A stretch of DNA of 61,352 nucleotides, filler included, from Platydemus manokwari (taxonomy: Eukaryota): the NCBI GenBank assembly GCA_037951405.1. It is 6 parts of 6 records of this genome, joined end to end, with 100 filler letters (N's around TTAATTAATTAA, not from the genome) between each part and the next. Parts side by side here need not be neighbours in the genome. Positions count along the whole stretch, not along the records: positions 31,975 to 42,159 come from JBBMOY011160104.1; 5 more parts are not named here. One strand, written 5' to 3'. The notes beneath the pieces were generated by a model. It saw only the letters and a list, made by a program, of their open reading frames with translations, did not search any database and had not been told where the DNA came from. This document shows, piece after piece, positions 31,975 through 42,159 of the stretch (positions within the stretch are counted from its first letter, which is position 1; each line of letters starts with the position of its first letter). A program made the translations under genes and the position numbers.

Positions 31975-33101
31975 TTAAGATCTACGTTTTAGTGAGCTAA
32001 TTAAATCCTATACAAAATAACCAAAATATTCACATAAAATATTTATAATCGATAAGTGTATTTAAATGGAAACGTCTCACTGGCAATCAAATAATCGAAA
32101 ACTACTAGTAATGCTTGTTTACTTAATTCCTTACTAAACAAGAAAGCTAAATAATGAATTAATCAGATTTATAGCTATAGATAAGTATTCAAAAGATAAA
32201 TGATAAGAAATATCAAATAAAAATTATCTTTTAAGATTTTAAGGGTAAAACGTTTTAATAAATAAATAAAAAAGAATTATACACATGATCAATTGTTTTT
32301 CTGTTGGCCTTATTCGAACATTTTATCAGTGCATTCATTGTACTGATTTTTTTAAGTCTAGCAACCAATTTACGTTACGCTCGATCTAGCACGATAGTTT
32401 CAGATATATTGTGCACATATTGAGAGAATGCAGTGTATTATCAAAGTTATTGGAATTGCTCATTACAAACACATTAAATAAATGTCATTGATTCTGAATG
32501 ATTTATAATTAATTGGTATAATTATGTGCTCACACATAACCTATCAGTGTCTTGTTTAAGCTTTGAAATTTGTTCGCGAATATCTGCGCTAGCCTTAATT
32601 CATTTATCTGGTCTCCTTATAAGTATTGATTGAATTGTGTCCATTGTAAATTCGAGATCTGTGGTTGTACCATTGTGTTGGTATGTGAGTGCATTCGTGT
32701 GCCGCATTCTCAGTAGCATTGTGCGCGTGTTATAGAGGTGGCCAATTTTATAATAGACAATCAATGAATCAGCCAAGATAGATTAAGCATAAATTTATTC
32801 TATTAATATTGAGCAACTAGCTTCACAAGGAACAATAATCAATAGCGCTATCACAAAAATACAATTCAATTCAGAAGCATAATAATAACACATAGAGATA
32901 TCAACGTTATACAATATACAAATCACGAAATGCACGCTGCCAAAGTGGGTTTGTTATTCGATGGCATAGTACCGTAAGGAATAAACAAAATAGAATAATT
33001 GAATATAGCTATCACGAAAATTTATAAAGTGCATCACAGGGTATCAAACGGAATCTGCAGATGCAGTATTTGTTGGTGGGCATATAAAATGTCATCAATG
33101 A

Positions 33102-36100
33102 TTATGTCATTTGTGCTCTGTTACGAGGATTTGCTCCATACTTTCCAATGATTGAGCCATCTTCATTGAAGTTGGCTAGAAAATATTGATATTAAGATTT
33201 CTTACAATGAGTCATAAATATCATATAAATCAATATTTTTAGAACATTGCATACAAATTAAATCCATTTTAATCTCAAACAGCGTGTGTTCCACTTACTC
33301 AATTATTAGCCGATTTTCTATAAATATAAACTGCTGCGAGAATGGGTATTGATTGATCCGTTGGTAGATTATTAAATAGTTGGAACAGTTCATATTGGAT
33401 TTCTTTTAGCCAAATAATTAATTTCAAAGTGTGTGTAACCCACATGAACAATGATTATTATAATATTCACGATCTGTGAATCATCAATCAGCGGTGTACT
33501 GATTTCAGTTTATTGGAATTAGTTAGGTTAATGTTCAATATTATTATTATTTTTAATTTTATCAACGTTAATATAATTGTTTATATTATTGATATTAACA
33601 TCATTATCATTATTAATTACAAAAAATAATAATTCTATTATTTTATTGTTCCTAATTTTTGTTGAAAATAAATATTTTGTTATCATTAATTCAAAATATG
33701 ATCGAAATGTGATCAATTTAATGAATCAATATAGACGATTGAATAAAATTACTTACAAAAATGAATTCTGCTTCATAATAGGTAATAATATATTTTATTT
33801 AATAATAACGGAAAACTAACATGGATCCAAATCGTAGTTGTCCAATTCGCCATCATCTGCACTACCAACACTGTGACCAGTTATCGACAAATTTCTTTCA
33901 GCCGTGCTGGCTGATAAAACGTCTGGATCATGATCTCTAAATGACAAATATCAAGTGATTTTATAAAGAATATAAAATCTATTCACTCTCTCTCATATGG
34001 CTTAAACATTTCCTCCTGAACTTCTTTCTCTGGGTCATAGCCATGCTCACGTTCAATTTTACCCACTAAATGATCATTTATAATAACCAATCAACAATCA
34101 AAAATTGATCATCAAACAAACATTGATAGGTTTCGCCTTTGTTTGCCATACAGTATCGGGTGAGGAGCACGATTAAGATAATGAGTATGAGCAATGCCAA
34201 TATAACAGCAATAATCCAATATATATATGCCGTGTCTACAAACTAAGTCAGATGTTTATCAAGGTATTTATAAAGTCACTTATTGGTTGATAATCCATTG
34301 TTATTTTTGCTTTCAACATGCTTCCCAATGTTACATCATTATTTGATGAATAAGCGAATTTACTTAGCGGAGATGATAATTCTAGATTACAAACGATATA
34401 ATTGGATTTGAGAGCATCTTTGACAAAGTTATCTCGTTTTGTATCATTAGAAACTATTGGACCTAGAGTCAAAGTTTTCTGAAATACAATACGATTAAGA
34501 CGTATTTGTGAAAAAGGAAGTACATAAATGTTATATAGTGGACATTACCGTGATTGGATCGATTTTACAATAGGGTGCGAAATCATTCAAATTTTGTTGT
34601 TCCAATCGATGACTATTAATAGACCAGAACTGATCCACAATTAATTCCTTGTTATTGTAAACACTGATATCGATTTCGCACTTGAATTCATGACTAGCTG
34701 CGCTGCTACATGCACTGGTGCAATTGTTTAATTCTGGTGCCACTTTAATAAGGGGTTTAACTCTGGGAACCGTATAAATCGATGTGCTTTTCACACTTAA
34801 ACCGAAATCATTTTGAGCAAAAAACATGATACTGTGATCCTGATAGACTTGTTGACCTAATGTTTTTTGCAAATTGTAAACATTATATGTTATTGTGACA
34901 TTGGATGGGAGAACATCATTGACGGAAAATGTAAAATTTAGCAAGCTTAAATAAGGATAAGATTTTTGCAATTCGGTTTGAGATGCTGATAATTGTTGCT
35001 TTGGGGGAATTTCCAGATGATTTATGAATAATTTCTGAAATTAACATATATATATATAATTTAGTGATCAATCTGAATATATGATACCAGATATTGTCGA
35101 GACACAAATAAATGAAAATAAACTCAAATAATGACAGGTATTTATTATTTATTAATGGTAATACTATAATCAGCATTATTGATTATAAAACTTTAGAATT
35201 GATCAACAGAAAAATTGTCCATAAATTCCGAGGTTGAATAAATAATCTTATCGAAGCAGTTGCTAAGGTAACAAGCATTTAATATGAAATATTTATTAGA
35301 ATGATAATCCATTTGATTTATCTTTTTTAATTAATAAGAATTCATTTATTTAATATCATATGGCTTTGTCTCACCAATTCTTTCGGCACATCCCTGTATG
35401 TGCAACTGAAAAACGAATTGTCATGCTCCCATACGTGTTGCAACAGAGGTAAACATTCTTTGTGAACGAGAGTCGGCGGCCCCAATACCTCAACATTGAT
35501 TGTGAACGTGAGCTTTTCTGGACCATCAGTCACTTCAAGTGTATAGACCCCAGCCATGTCTGACGTAATGTCAGATTGGAATTTCACTCTATATCTATCG
35601 CGTTTTCTAATATCTCCATCATTGATTTCCACCCCATTTTGACGCCAAATCCCTGTAGCGGTTGATGATGCTTGATACATGGCATAAATTGACACAATTG
35701 GAACTCGATTGGTGCTGTGCTTCTGAAAGAGAAGGTTGAAATAAAAATGCATGAATTATAACGATTAATTAGTATCAACCTTTCTCGCATAGATTTTCAT
35801 ATTCTGTATCAAAGGTGAAATTGCTACTAGGGGTAGCTTAAATGGGGACATTCTTCCATCAAATACTACACCTTCTTTGATCATATCGCCTTCATACGAT
35901 GATATATAAGTATTAATAGGGCTGATACCCAGTTGAGACTTAGTGTAGCACATAAGGCTATATGTCAATGATGGAGCTGTACTTTGAGGTTGAATTTCAA
36001 ATATTAAGAGTTTTCCAAATTCGTTGATATACCAGTCCCACTCTGACATCTTAAACAACTCCTTAGGCTCCAAAATAGGGTCACCCGTCCATCTCATAGC

Positions 36101-36534
36101 TGTATATTTTTTGCAATGTGTGAAAGACACACGATCAATTGACGGCAAGCTATCGAAATTCGGTTTCACAGCACAAACAATCCAGGAAACTGGACTCAGG
36201 AAATCTTGGGGAATCCACTTGGGACGAATAGGATTGAGCGATAATTCACCTTCTACACATGAGAAAGAGATGGGTGTCGAATTGCGTAGCACAGGAGTCA
36301 TGTGTGGGGTTTTTAAATTATTCGCATTCAATACAAGATCTATTTTTGGTGAATTTAAGATAGAGTTCTTCATTTGACTTCATCACTTACTTTCTTCCCA
36401 ATAAATCCAATCACGTATCTGAATATTGTTCGAACGAATCATAAAATTTCCACGATTATCACGAGCTTCACAATAATATTCTCCAGAAATATCTTTTGCA
36501 GTTCCAGAGATCGATTTTATTGTCAACTTCAATC
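33102..36534 (-). CDS. L1CAM/neuroglian-like Ig-superfamily single-pass receptor (about 706 aa visible; 5' exons not found)
   Basis: Nine phase-consistent GT-AG exons: 36534-36391, 36339-35780, 35722-35375, 35034-34549, 34478-34280, 34235-34122, 34065-33987, 33936-33821, 33175-33102. Ig motifs DISGEYYCEA and DMAGVYTLEV; TM YWIIAVILALLILIILIVLL. L1-type tail NKGETYQLGKIEREHGYDPEKEVQEEMFKPYER..SADDGELDNYDLDPSNFNEDGSIIGKY. Confidence 0.9.
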
Positions 36535-37147
36535 CTTTTACAAAAATCAATAATTATTATTAATAATGGGTAGTCAAATAATTATAGTGAACAAAATTGA
36601 ATAATAATAATAATTATTATTAATGATAATAATATTAATTAGTATCTAAAACGATTAATAATTCATCCACTAATAATTATTAGCAAAATATAGAATCATG
36701 AGAGTTAAACATTAAAGAACAATTTTTTATCTAAATTTGATGGAAATTCTTCGTTTATTTTATTTCCTCTCATTAATAAAAATGATACAGATTCTTTTGA
36801 ATCCATTTTATCGAAAATTTCCGATTGTTAAGAAAAATATTGACAAATAAATTTTCAATCTACACTTAATCTCTCAACTCACGAGAAACTACAATTATTG
36901 CTTATCCATTTATGACAAATAAAAAAAAATGATAAGACACTGTGAATATTCCATCCCACTGAGATAAGAATGAAAGTAATTGTTATTTCTAAATTATTTT
37001 GCAAATCAAATACTTGCTATTGTTATGTCATGATGAAATGATTAAGATGAATTGAATTACACTTTATAATAAACTATTCTCCATGTTGACTTAAATGAAT
37101 GAAAATTTGACGATTAAAACAAAATTTGGACAGTCTTATTAAACTAT

Positions 37148-37840
37148 TTAATTATCAATGATCACGGATCCATGTGGAACCTGTGATTGTATTTCGGTTT
37201 ATGAGTTTTTAAGATTGAAATAAAAGATCGATTAAACCTTTGATGAAAAACCATCAGAGAAATTCCTTACTGACAACTTTTAAGGAAAAATTTTATTTAA
37301 CAATGATATTAAAGAATATTATCAAATAGAGTTTGAAAAGATTCTACAACTGAGATGGTTACGCCACACAATACTTTTTACTGTTTTATCTATCTGGTCA
37401 AGTTCAATAGGTGTTTTAATATTTAAAAATATTAACTTTTTATGTTTTATTTCTTTATTCGTTGATATAAATTACCATTTTGATCAGTAAACTCATTGGA
37501 TAATTATTATCGGAAAATTCTGATGTTTATGTTATCATAATTTTAAAAAATCGTATGCTAAATATAATTATTAGAAATCATAATAGTTATAAGGTATTCC
37601 TATTTAAAATGTTGAAAACCACAACAAGAAACTCGCGACTGACATAAAGTATATAATAGAACATGAAATTCACCAATCAATACTTCTACTTCACAGCCAC
37701 TTTATTCAATTTAATTATCATCGATCACTGATCCGCGGTACCGTTGATTGTATTTTAGTATAATATGATTTTATTTTTCAATTAAATTATGAGCTTTTAA
37801 GACTGAAATAAAAGATCATAGAAGCCACTGATAAAAAACC
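37148..37840. repeat. Imperfect direct repeat pair (about 105-130 bp) at 37148-37252 and 37711-37840
   Basis: Shared TTAATTATCA..GATCAC.GATCC..TGATTGTATTT..TATGAG.TTTTAAGA.TGAAATAAAAGATC..AAAAACC. Confidence 0.6.
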
Positions 37841-39159
37841 TTGAATTTTTGGAAAGAATATGATCGACACCAAATAAATATAATTCGACTACTTGGTTTC
37901 ATCAAGTATCATAATCAATACATATTAAATTCAAATAATTGTGAGAAATACATTTGCTCGGTTTTTTAATAATAAAAAGATCATTTTTCGGTTGGATTGA
38001 TTTAGAATAACATAACAAGCTCGCCTAATAAGAAATTATATCGATTATTTTTTGTGCCAAGAATTTATAATTATGATATTAAGCCGATGATAAGAAATTC
38101 ATTTATCATTACGTAGTAAATATCCATTCTTTTTGTATTGCTCATGCGCAAATAAAACGATCTGATAGTGAAATGATATGTTTTCTGAATAATCTGATGG
38201 CTTAGTTTAGAATATACAGTTGGTTTAGTTACTGTTCAGGGGTAACTTTCCTTTAAAAGTCTATCATTTAAATATAAACTGAATTATTACTACTATCATC
38301 TGGAGATGGTAATTGTCTCGATTAACTTGCTATGAATTTGTTTTAAATAAATATATAAATTATAATTAAATTATAATTTTAATGCAACATTTCTCTTTCT
38401 GAAATCATATCAGCAAAGATATTTCAAAATGGATATCTAATGTGGTATAAAATAAAAAAAAATCGTCATTCTGTGCTGATAAACGATTTCATTTAGTTGT
38501 AATATCGATTAAAAGAAAAGCTGAATAAATGATCAATGGTCTTGATAATGCATTGTTATACGAGTATCTAATTTCAAGTTCCCCAATGAATTTATGGAAT
38601 AAATTTCCAGTTTAAATCAAATCTCATTAAAATTGATTGAGACATGAGACAAATATTGGCATTTTTGAATGATATAATAATGGAACACAATCAGAAAACT
38701 ATTCATTAGATTTACAGAAAGAAATTCATCGATGTCACTTGTGAGTTTTTTAGAAATTTCTTTTTATGGGGCACTGGCGGTTTGAATCGTTCCATTTCTA
38801 CGAATTGATTATTTTGATATTACCACAAAGAATAGTTTACAAGTCGGTAATTTAAAATAATTAATTAAGTAATTAAAATTTACTTTTTAAAATTAATTAA
38901 CACATTTATTTAATATTAATCCCACCTTAATCAGTGTTTAATATAGTCATAATAACTTTATTTCGGATAACCAAATGAAAACTATAACACAATGAGAAAT
39001 CATTCTCAGTTTAAGGATTTAATAAAATAAATTTATAAATAAATTTTATTTTGAAAGTAATGGAAATCGGTGGAACAGTAAAATTTTAATTTAAATTCAA
39101 TAATTTTGCATTTTCCGAAAATTATTTTAAAACCCATGAAAATAATGTTAGAGACGAAT

Positions 39160-39790
39160 TATGGTGTTGGTCAAGGAATTTTTTAACAATACAGATTACA
39201 GAGTCTTTGTAGAGAAAGAATGCCAAGACACGGAATCCAAATCCATTGATCTTCAACTAATAAATTATCGAAAACCCACGATCCTCCTAACCGATGTAAA
39301 ATGGGCATTGAGGAAAACCTGCATTGATGACCGAAACAGCTCAAAAGCGTATTGAAGAATACTCAGACTTCCAAAATGCGATCAAAGAAAGAAGCCTGAC
39401 TAGACTGTTCACTTTTGTTGTAGGGGTTCTCTGGACTTGGCAAACACAGACCAGCGACATTGCCATAAAGAAACTAGGGATGGATAAGAAAGCGATAAAC
39501 AAAATAGGTCTTGCTTGCATAAAGTCTAATATAATTGCAAAATATCTGCTAGGGATGAGCAACAAATACAGCTTTAAAAATATGGGAAGACAATATCTCA
39601 GACAACAACGACTAGAAGTCCGAAGACAGAATTGATTGAAGCGTTGAAATGATTGTATGATTGAGCTAGCCAACTGTGATTTATAGATCGATCGAAGGAA
39701 AGAACCATGTACATCCCACATTTTAATGTATGGCTTTCTCTATTATCAATGTTTATGAATAAATATTTGTATGTGATACTTAAATAAATA
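39160..39790 (+). mobile_element. 5'-truncated RLE-type (R2/NeSL-like) non-LTR retrotransposon, antisense to and upstream of the L1-like exons
   Basis: Overlapping ORFs give IDLQL..ILLTDVK (PD-D-K region) and AQKRIEEY..FVVGVLWTW..SDIAIKKLG, the RLE C-terminal pattern. Followed by a short 3' region with AATAAA and a TAAA tail. Confidence 0.7.
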
Positions 39791-42159
39791 ATTTGACAAT
39801 CATTTTAGATTGTTAATAATTAATATAGTAAATAAAAGGCATTTTTGGTAATAAGAATATGTATATATGAATATGTGTGTAAGTGTATGTGCGTGTAGAG
39901 ACAGTGAGAAAAAGAGAAATACACACCAGAGGTATGTACTGAGACACGCAATAAAACACATGGAAACTAGCATTAAAGATTCTTTATAATTAGAATAGAG
40001 ATAAATTACAGTTTATTTTCTATCTTCACTCATGATCACCACACTTTTAAGGAATCCCCAACGCTACATATAATGTCCACATAAGTGAAGATAGACCTAG
40101 ATTAATTCATCACTTGACAGAATAATTTATTTATCATTTTAAAATTTTTCTTTTAATTAACTTAACTGATACATTTTAAAATTTTTACCTTATTTGTACG
40201 ATATATTTCATTTATAATACTAATCAATTACTCCGTTAACTATCATTTTAAACTAAATCGATCCAAAACCTAAATATATTTCATCATACTATATTATTCA
40301 CTTAAATTCAGATCACCTACTTCATCATCATATCAATGTATGATTATTAACCACTTCTACTTTCACAGTGCCTTCAACGTCAACAAATCTATTTTTCCTC
40401 TAAACTGCAACAACACTACATTATTTTGAAAGCTCCAAACTTTTGCTGCTCTCGATGATATAATGTCGAAACACTGAGAAGCTCAAATTAGGAAGATAAA
40501 ACTATAAAAGAAAACCTAACTACCTACTTAGAAAACATTTCCCTACCGTGTCGTGAAGGCCTCATTTATGTTAAATAAATATTAGTATTCTTAATTAAAG
40601 TAGTAGGACCACTGCAATTGTATTAAAGGTGCCGTAAAAGTAGTTGTAAAGTACATTAACGTATTTTAAGTGATGGTATAAGACCTAATCTAACAAAATG
40701 TGTTTCAAGCAAGTATTTGTTAGTTTTTGTAAGGACTGATTCCTCTTAATATTATCTAATATTTGAGCCTGATACTTTGTGTTATTTAAGAACCTCTGTA
40801 ATATAGTAGCGTAATATAACACACTTTTAAGCAGAAGAGCAGTCAAATCGTACCACCAGTTGTGCTCCCGTAGCTGGCAAATTTTACAGTAATGATGGTA
40901 ATAATAATGATTATAAAATTAATATAAATACCAAGATTAATAACGGTTATGATAACAATAATATTCACGATTATATTTATTTACTAGTTCATACGATAGT
41001 TGGAATGATTCAATAAAGTATTACAAGCTAAAGTAATCCTTGATATCATTCATTTTGGATTCCAAGGGAATAATTGCATTTTGGATTTTATAAATTTAGT
41101 AAGTCAGCATATTGGTTACCATAGATATTTCAATTAAAGAATTTAATTGAAATAAATGTAGCTTTGGTGTGATTATCAAATGATTTATCAGAAAACTTCA
41201 GGCAATAATAATTATTGACGATATTTACTAATTCAACCTCATTTGATAAAAAAAGTATCATGGCAGATAGCTATAAGTTCTCATCTCAGGAAGAGAATAA
41301 TATAATATAATTAAAATGAAAATAAACTATAATAAATGGTTTACTGGAATATATTGGTGCATTTTAGATGATAGGAAAAAAATGCACAAAAATCTGAGAT
41401 ATCCTGTCAAGCTTGAATTAACAAAGCGTGGTTAAAAATTAGTTTTGTATATATTAATAGAAGAGGGTAAATATAAATATTTCAAAGTTTCAAGATTTTA
41501 CACAGATAAACAAATGTTGTGCTTATAGAAAATAAAATGATTATAATTTTATAAATAATTATATTCCCATCGCTTAATCTTACTGATTTTCTCTACACGT
41601 CGCGTGTTTTTAAAATAATTATTATAATTTTAAGGGTTTATAAATATATAAAAAATGCAGATTAATTACAAAGAGATGGTTTAATTTGAAATCACTACTA
41701 ATAACTTGATTCTACAGATTCTTTATGAGAAGCTTATGTGGAGAGAAGACTCTTTTCGCTGAGAGTAAGAGAATTCATCTTAATTGCATGGAAACACTTT
41801 TATAGAAAAATAACAGCGGGTGATTCATTGTATGGGTTTTTACAAATAATGACAAGTTTGATGATGATGGAAAAGAATAATCAAATAATGACGTTCATAA
41901 CGCTGTAAGTCTTTCTAGAAAGGAATACTATTCTGTTATTCAATTAATAAAAAAAATTTCGACCAGCCCGACATGTTTGATTTTAAAGCTATTGAAGGAC
42001 TGAATCAAGTCTCAGAAGCCTTGAAGAAGAATAAAAGAATTTGCACACTAGACAATTGGATTATAAAAAATAAAAAGTTCATTTAATTCATTCTTAAACG
42101 TCACATTTTTCGAATTCCCCAAAGGTGGCAATTAGAAGGAGGAATACTGTATATGTAGT

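Follow-up and report, generated by a model that had tools for sequence, protein, structure and literature searches.

Here we describe a gene on the minus strand at positions 33102-36534 of a 61,352-nucleotide stretch of DNA, filler included, from the genome of Platydemus manokwari (assembly GCA_037951405.1), which as a whole we call the window. The piece of the window analysed here runs from 31975 to 42159 (JBBMOY011160104.1). The gene in it is probably functional and constrained, and it would encode a type I membrane receptor of the adhesion type that combines a short, divergent ectodomain of five immunoglobulin (Ig)-like modules, without the canonical block of fibronectin type III (FN3) modules, with a cytoplasmic tail of the L1 type. 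From cnidarians to mammals, receptors of the L1 family carry a fixed ectodomain of six Ig and three to five FN3 domains, and their FN3 block is believed to determine how far the molecule reaches and to hold the sites for cis-interaction and cleavage. In the family layout, six Ig and five FN3 domains are followed by a transmembrane helix and a tail that bears the ankyrin-binding motif EDGSFIGQY (PMC2196473).

The gene model was built by translating the minus strand in three frames and inspecting the splice boundaries. It comprises nine exons which, once spliced, form a frame of 705 codons without a stop, followed by TAA. The introns measure, in order, 51, 57, 340, 70, 44, 56, 50 and 645 nucleotides (nt), and all eight run from GT to AG; GC ranges from 27 to 39% across the 3.4 kb of exon-bearing sequence. 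The tiny introns with their TTTCAG/TTTAG acceptors, a GC content of 27% and the origin of the relatives in metagenomes point to a small invertebrate. The model yields an ectodomain of ~577 amino acids (aa), a single transmembrane helix and a tail of 100 aa. An initial annotation of the same DNA had proposed a spliced ectodomain of about 580 aa here, and rebuilding the frames and splice sites reproduced its coordinates along with that length; the module reading FKC..FW..TLTL..YIVC meets the transmembrane exon over a 44-nt intron, exactly as had been described. Its argument that no room is left for hidden FN3 exons also holds: because the introns between exon 1 and the membrane are only 51, 57, 340, 70 and 44 nt long, no domain-sized exon can be concealed among them. 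The 340-nt intron, the largest in the ectodomain part, interrupts a module and contains short AT-rich open reading frames (ORFs) only.

The membrane anchor and the tail occupy the last four exons. Exon 6 (34122-34235, on the minus strand like every exon of the model) is joined to exon 5 over the 44-nt intron (GTGACT..TGTAG) and encodes the transmembrane helix, at model residues ~583-603, as a 21-residue hydrophobic run with basic residues after it, together with a juxtamembrane KGETY. Splice sites and frame define the next two exons: exon 7 (33987-34065) encodes the tail segment GKIEREHGYDPEKEVQEEMFKPYER, whose motif order is, by established knowledge, that of L1 tails, and exon 8 (33821-33936) encodes an acidic, Ser-rich segment ending in SADDGELDNYDLDP. 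Exon 9 (33102-33175) encodes NFNEDGSIIGKY, a motif of the FIGQY class of ankyrin-binding sequences, then 11 more residues and the stop. Read from the helix onwards, the tail opens with RYCMANKGETY and continues with DPEKE..MFKPY, an acidic stretch rich in Ser, then SADDGELDNY and finally the terminal motif 11 residues before the stop, so that every element of the L1-type tail claimed in the initial annotation is present. The NEDGSIIGKY of the last exon is identical to EDGSFIGQY at seven of nine positions and retains the Tyr; the pattern EDGS.IG.Y occurs once in the piece, against 4e-6 occurrences expected by chance in a six-frame translation, and not at all in 300 shuffles.

The Pfam profile Bravo_FIGEY (PF13882) was the only match on exon 9, over profile positions 71-84 of 86, with 19.3-19.5 bits and an E-value of 0.002-0.003. 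The gathering cut-off is 23.8, and the score falls under it because the 23-aa exon spans only the end of the profile. The remaining tail exons (25-38 aa), scanned singly against Pfam, gave no match, the 25-aa piece of exon 7 on its own included. A PDB search with exon 9 found DGSF.G.FG-like strings in NHL repeats as well, and since such strings occur elsewhere, the case for an L1 tail is built on the motifs as a complete, ordered set that follows the transmembrane helix. On the strength of that set the tail is very probably of the L1 type, and by analogy it may bind ankyrin.

The ectodomain was searched exon by exon against profiles, PDB and folds, an approach that splits modules 4 and 5 and thereby lowers sensitivity. 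The fn3 profile (PF00041) had no match at E up to 10 in any of the nine exons or in ten related sequences, and the exon-by-exon scans with Pfam and NCBIfam returned only weak Ig_2 and Bravo_FIGEY matches. Searches with phmmer and with profiles of exons 2-4 against all PDB sequences, together with the Pfam scans, gave no match to the L1 family. Comparison of the exon profiles with hhalign found no internal repeat signal, Rfam and tandem-repeat scans found nothing relevant, and the protein-atlas feature searches gave generic or noise-level matches only.

Taken from the amino terminus, exon 1 (36391-36534), which has an AG acceptor and a GTAAGT donor, encodes the E-F-G strands that form the latter half of Ig-like module 1 (LKLTI..SGEYYCEA..SNNIQIRD); this module shows the classic ..L.L.I....D.SGEYYCEA.. 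signature and has no profile match. Exon 2 (35780-36339, 186 aa) encodes one enlarged Ig-like module that carries an insertion and four conserved Cys, and after it a conserved linker with the A-strand leading into module 3; alignment with its relatives shows the four conserved Cys and several conserved Trp. Pfam had no match on exon 2. An AlphaFold2 model of it from a seven-sequence alignment (pLDDT 49) has one beta-sandwich core with an inserted helix. Compared with 48,161 chains by VIA-align, the model matched almost only members of the Ig superfamily (Sidekick, FGFR D2, NCAM2, Dscam, contactin, neurofascin, hemolin), with Z values of at most 4.7, which is under the level where matches mean more than a common arrangement; Foldseek found no match for it. 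Exon 3 (35375-35722, 116 aa) encodes Ig-like module 3 (B-G strands, with the Cys replaced) and the start of module 4 (PPTLV..C..HVWEH..FFSC). Module 3 matched Ig_2 at E 0.014 in exon 3 itself, and Ig_2/Ig_3 in its orthologs, at E 0.003 in P0008 and at 0.0023 in L002:1281-1751, all under the 27-bit cut-off. A profile made from three exon 3 sequences matched nothing but Ig domains in PDB (titin, LRIG1, Dscam, MyBP-C, Otk, CEACAM1, DCC), the best at E 0.0028, and exon 3 was the only exon for which the PDB searches yielded Ig matches.

The two modules nearest the membrane are divided between exons. Exon 4 (34549-35034, 162 aa) completes module 4 (..FAQNDFG..SIYTVP) and opens module 5, of which it encodes the first half (FKC..FW); exon 5 (34280-34478, 66 aa), defined by splice sites and frame, supplies the other half (TLTL..YIVC) together with a short stalk. 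Judged by eye, a Cys..Trp..Cys triad in module 5 is spaced as in Ig domains; module 4 shows a conserved FxC motif of the B-strand and an A.N..G F-G turn, lacks the second Cys, and begins with a PPTLV..HVWEH that is compatible with FN3 or Ig. Exon 5 had no match in the family profile search. Exon 4 had none in Pfam, and in PDB sequence and profile searches none except a weak one to haptoglobin; that candidate, residues 65-111 against its CCP/sushi domain (profile E 0.005), was taken as chance, the CCP cysteines being absent. Pfam gave no Ig profile match to modules 1, 2, 4 and 5.

By these patterns the first three modules appear to be Ig-like, the last two carry Cys and Trp patterns of the Ig style, and it is plausible that all five are Ig modules, including the two next to the membrane. 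The canonical block of four or five FN3 modules is absent, and at most one or two of the modules may be degenerate FN3-like ones. The initial annotation had spoken of about five Ig-like domains in an Ig-only ectodomain. The number stands in that there are about five modules and not eleven, although only ~4.5 of them lie within 33102-36534, where the model is truncated at its 5' end. For Ig-only there is the lack of any fn3 match, the sub-threshold Ig matches of module 3 and the low-confidence Ig-like model of exon 2; the part that did not carry over concerns modules 4 and 5, which have neither a profile match nor a usable model.

Evidence that this is a gene family comes from relatives of single exons. 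A full HMMER search with exon 2 among 1.84 billion representative proteins retrieved six short, unannotated ORF fragments, 27-48% identical and with the same exon limits; it retrieved no annotated full-length protein and no annotated L1 protein, which fits the proposal that the gene is lineage-specific. A word-based protein search with exon 2 found nothing, while with exon 3 it found one known fragment and with exon 4 one relative at 65%. The ORF fragments result from gene calling in the prokaryotic style on small contigs of eukaryotic origin. One read assembly (SRR33002330) supplied L001, L002 and L004, L003 comes from a JGI metagenome and its ENA re-assembly, and the others come from ENA only and from UniParc. 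The equivalents of exon 1 in L001, L002 and L003 are 51-63% identical to it by tblastn, exon 3 is 53% identical to its counterpart in L003 and 48% to that in L002, and exon 4 shares 65% identity with P0009, an ORF from an ENA metagenome that stops at the same boundary of the exon. L002 holds a complete Ig1 in one ORF. The exon limits ..IYARK|, ..PKEL| and ..DPVT| are conserved in the relatives, whose contigs are 0.6-2.5 kb long. Exons 4 and 3 give dN/dS values of ~0.21 and ~0.22; elsewhere synonymous sites are saturated. From these comparisons we regard this as a real gene family under purifying selection relative to its distant relatives. It is a small family, so far seen only as unannotated genomic fragments from soil metagenomes and read assemblies, and scans of metagenome, viral and prokaryote genome contigs found no further relatives.

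Two observations from these searches stand apart. The three exon 2 relatives from SRR33002330 are 42-48% identical to the window and ~44% identical to one another, on contigs with 37%, 41% and 47% GC, and they are either several paralogs in one organism or the yield of a mixed sample. A seventh match of the exon 2 search, P0006, was rejected as a relative: this sequence of 1621 aa consists of ten identical Cys-rich copies of ~150 aa, matched residues 56-99 of exon 2 ten times, and looks like an assembly or annotation artefact unrelated to the gene.

Exon 1 opens in the middle of an Ig domain, at the E strand, and the nine-exon model is thus incomplete at its 5' end, with the rest of module 1 and the signal peptide lying upstream of 36534. 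A tentative upstream exon at 36890-37016, also on the minus strand, would supply the A'-B-C strands of the first module (..ITITFILISVGWN..FFFICHKWISNNC) and has an AG acceptor at 37017-37018. In L001 and in L002 the upstream ORF aligns weakly to 37016-36890, 350 nt upstream of exon 1, with the order and strand that would be expected; at E 1.1 and 10, neither match is significant alone. Very tentative, and judged by eye, is a small minus-strand exon at 36711-36793 for the C'-D part of the module (..NKINEEFPSNLDKK..). Equivalent small exons end in ..KFSNRKG in L001 and in ..KFQDKKG in L003, and the phases of the candidate are compatible only with an exon 1 acceptor at 36526 instead of 36534. A candidate for the A strand near 37701-37663 is weaker still. 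In L001, a Met-initiated, hydrophobic and signal-peptide-like exon has an AG|GTATGA donor and sits 41 nt ahead of the exon that starts Ig1; since the signal-peptide-like exon directly precedes Ig1 there, the mature protein would begin at module 1, and the family would have five modules. The complete ectodomain would then measure about 640 aa in five modules, as against ~1,100 aa in canonical L1.

The same upstream region contains direct-repeat blocks at 37130-37252 and 37693-37840, 42 and 54 nt long, 76-81% identical and 563-588 nt apart, which suggests a duplicated element of ~0.57 kb within the putative 5' intron region.

Several points weigh against the reading of an intact five-module receptor with an L1 tail. 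A scan for a signal-peptide exon upstream to the edge of the piece gave nothing convincing. The sole public run with DNA of the locus is genomic, its contigs being collinear with the window, introns included. In L002 the stretch of over 730 nt that follows exon 3 contains no recognisable exon 4, so that the structure downstream of exon 3 has no confirmation in any relative. Homologs of the transmembrane and tail exons were likewise not recovered, no relative contig extending to exon 5, the transmembrane exon or the tail, and the Bravo_FIGEY score, obtained on single exons, is under the Pfam cut-off. The AlphaFold2 model of exon 4, made from two sequences, has a pLDDT of 35 and is unusable, and that of exon 2 is also of low confidence; because of this, modules 4 and 5 are assigned a fold only from patterns recognised by eye in their sequence.

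These weak points leave space for other explanations. Perhaps the FN3 block is reduced and not absent, with module 4 and possibly module 5 being degenerate FN3 modules, so that about three Ig and one or two FN3 modules would form a shrunken L1 in canonical order. By eye, the start of module 4 (GPPTLV..(13 aa)..HVWEH) resembles the A-B strands of FN3 with their Trp, the end (..FFAQNDFG..S..IYTVP) fits an FN3 F-G motif equally with an I-set one, there is no F-strand Cys, and the protein-atlas features of exon 4 point to generic beta-sandwich families only (REJ/PKD, at 0.87). We nevertheless find the idea doubtful, since the fn3 model, which is usually sensitive, has no match at E up to 10 on exons 3 and 4 or on P0009 and P0008, module 4 is long for FN3 at ~125 aa and conserves a B-strand-like FxC, and the Cys..Trp..Cys triad of module 5 is typical of Ig. 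A different question is whether the gene descends from L1 at all. An unrelated family of the Ig superfamily might have gained an L1-type tail by exon shuffling, or kept its tail while the ectodomain was replaced; the separate small exons that encode the tail would suit such a history, as would an ectodomain for which no similar sequence turned up among L1-family proteins or their chains in PDB, and the exon 2 module, with its four conserved Cys and insertion, has no counterpart in L1. However, a divergent ectodomain on a conserved tail is equally expected from a fast-evolving true L1 paralog, the layout of Ig modules, single transmembrane helix and motifs in L1 order is L1-like, and there is no donor or intermediate for comparison, all of which makes an origin outside L1 decidedly improbable in our estimation. 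It is quite unlikely, too, that the L1 cytoplasmic cassette is a portable module, which in a lineage-specific family of soil and aquatic micro-invertebrates links ankyrin and spectrin, through the L1 tail, to an L1-unrelated ectodomain whose five odd Ig-like modules include one with a four-Cys insertion; if it were true, the gene would represent a new class of ankyrin-linked adhesion receptor and not a trimmed L1.

A decaying or 5'-truncated copy, that is, a pseudogene or partial duplicate not expressed as modelled, would account for the failure to find a signal-peptide exon in the piece, for the apparent loss of the B-strand Cys of module 1 in the tentative upstream exon, for the AT-rich, repeat-bearing 5.6 kb upstream and for the fact that only genomic reads cover the locus. 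It is a highly improbable explanation all the same: the nine exons are open and their splice sites intact over 3.4 kb at 27-39% GC, where stops arise easily, the tail motifs are intact and dN/dS is ~0.2. We therefore retain the functional receptor with five Ig-like modules and an L1-type tail as the probable reading.

The rest of the piece holds features of lesser relevance to the gene. At 39152-39632 on the plus strand, two adjacent ORFs of 67 and 107 aa without a Pfam match lie where GC is locally higher and the sequence is skewed towards purines; they could belong to a neighbouring gene or be what is left of a transposon. Further on, GC skew is -0.45 at 39975-40474, directly after a stretch at +0.24, and a low-complexity run rich in TG/CA occupies ~39840-39900.

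Among known systems, the closest point of comparison is the L1 family itself (L1CAM, CHL1, NrCAM and neurofascin; neuroglian of Drosophila; LAD-1/SAX-7 of C. elegans). Like these, the predicted receptor is of type I with Ig-like modules at its amino terminus, and its tail of ~100 aa (85-150 aa served as the criterion) has the family motifs in the family order, with a terminal EDGS-x-IG-x-Y. Unlike them, it has about five modules and no detectable FN3, where the canonical arrangement is six Ig and three to five FN3 (PMC2196473); its ectodomain has no sequence similarity to L1 ectodomains, Ig1-4 included; and its motif reads IIGKY in place of FIGQY, FIGEY or FIGAY. In Ig count alone the difference may be five modules against six, a comparison in which Ig profile matches fall on module 3 only and the 5' end in the window is incomplete. 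Because neither FN3 modules nor homology of the ectodomain was found and the tail motif was, we class the gene not as a canonical L1 member but as a variant of the L1 kind.

In the short isoform of C. elegans LAD-1/SAX-7, the same tail carries an L1-type ectodomain that is shortened naturally: alternative splicing removes Ig domains 1 and 2, and all five FN3 domains stay (PMC2196473). The gene described here instead lacks the FN3 block, and lacks it in the genome rather than by a splice choice. Ig-only receptors of the nectin/CAR/JAM type and other Ig-only cell adhesion molecules of the Ig superfamily likewise set Ig-like modules directly on the transmembrane helix; those families, however, lack an L1-type ankyrin-binding tail, and no sequence relation to them was detected. 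A literature search found no L1-type protein without FN3, although an earlier description in some lineage is possible.

If the receptor works as its parts suggest, the Ig-like modules of the ectodomain would bind a partner, either in the matrix or on another cell, and the cytoplasmic tail, an L1-family cassette of juxtamembrane KGxxY, acidic F.xY stretch, SxDDxLxxY and EDGS-IIGKY, would tie the receptor through its IIGKY to ankyrin and spectrin. The conserved Tyr may act as a phospho-switch, by analogy with L1, neurofascin, neuroglian and LAD-1 (PMC2196473), and with the shorter ectodomain the binding surface would sit nearer to the membrane than that of canonical L1. Until a transcript and the domain folds are confirmed, the practical value is limited. 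A selected family that has an ankyrin-binding tail on a five-module ectodomain of half the usual length, with no recognisable FN3, would show that tail and ectodomain can evolve independently and that ankyrin-coupled adhesion needs no FN3 stalk, and its receptor would be a natural minimal L1-type molecule for structure-function work.

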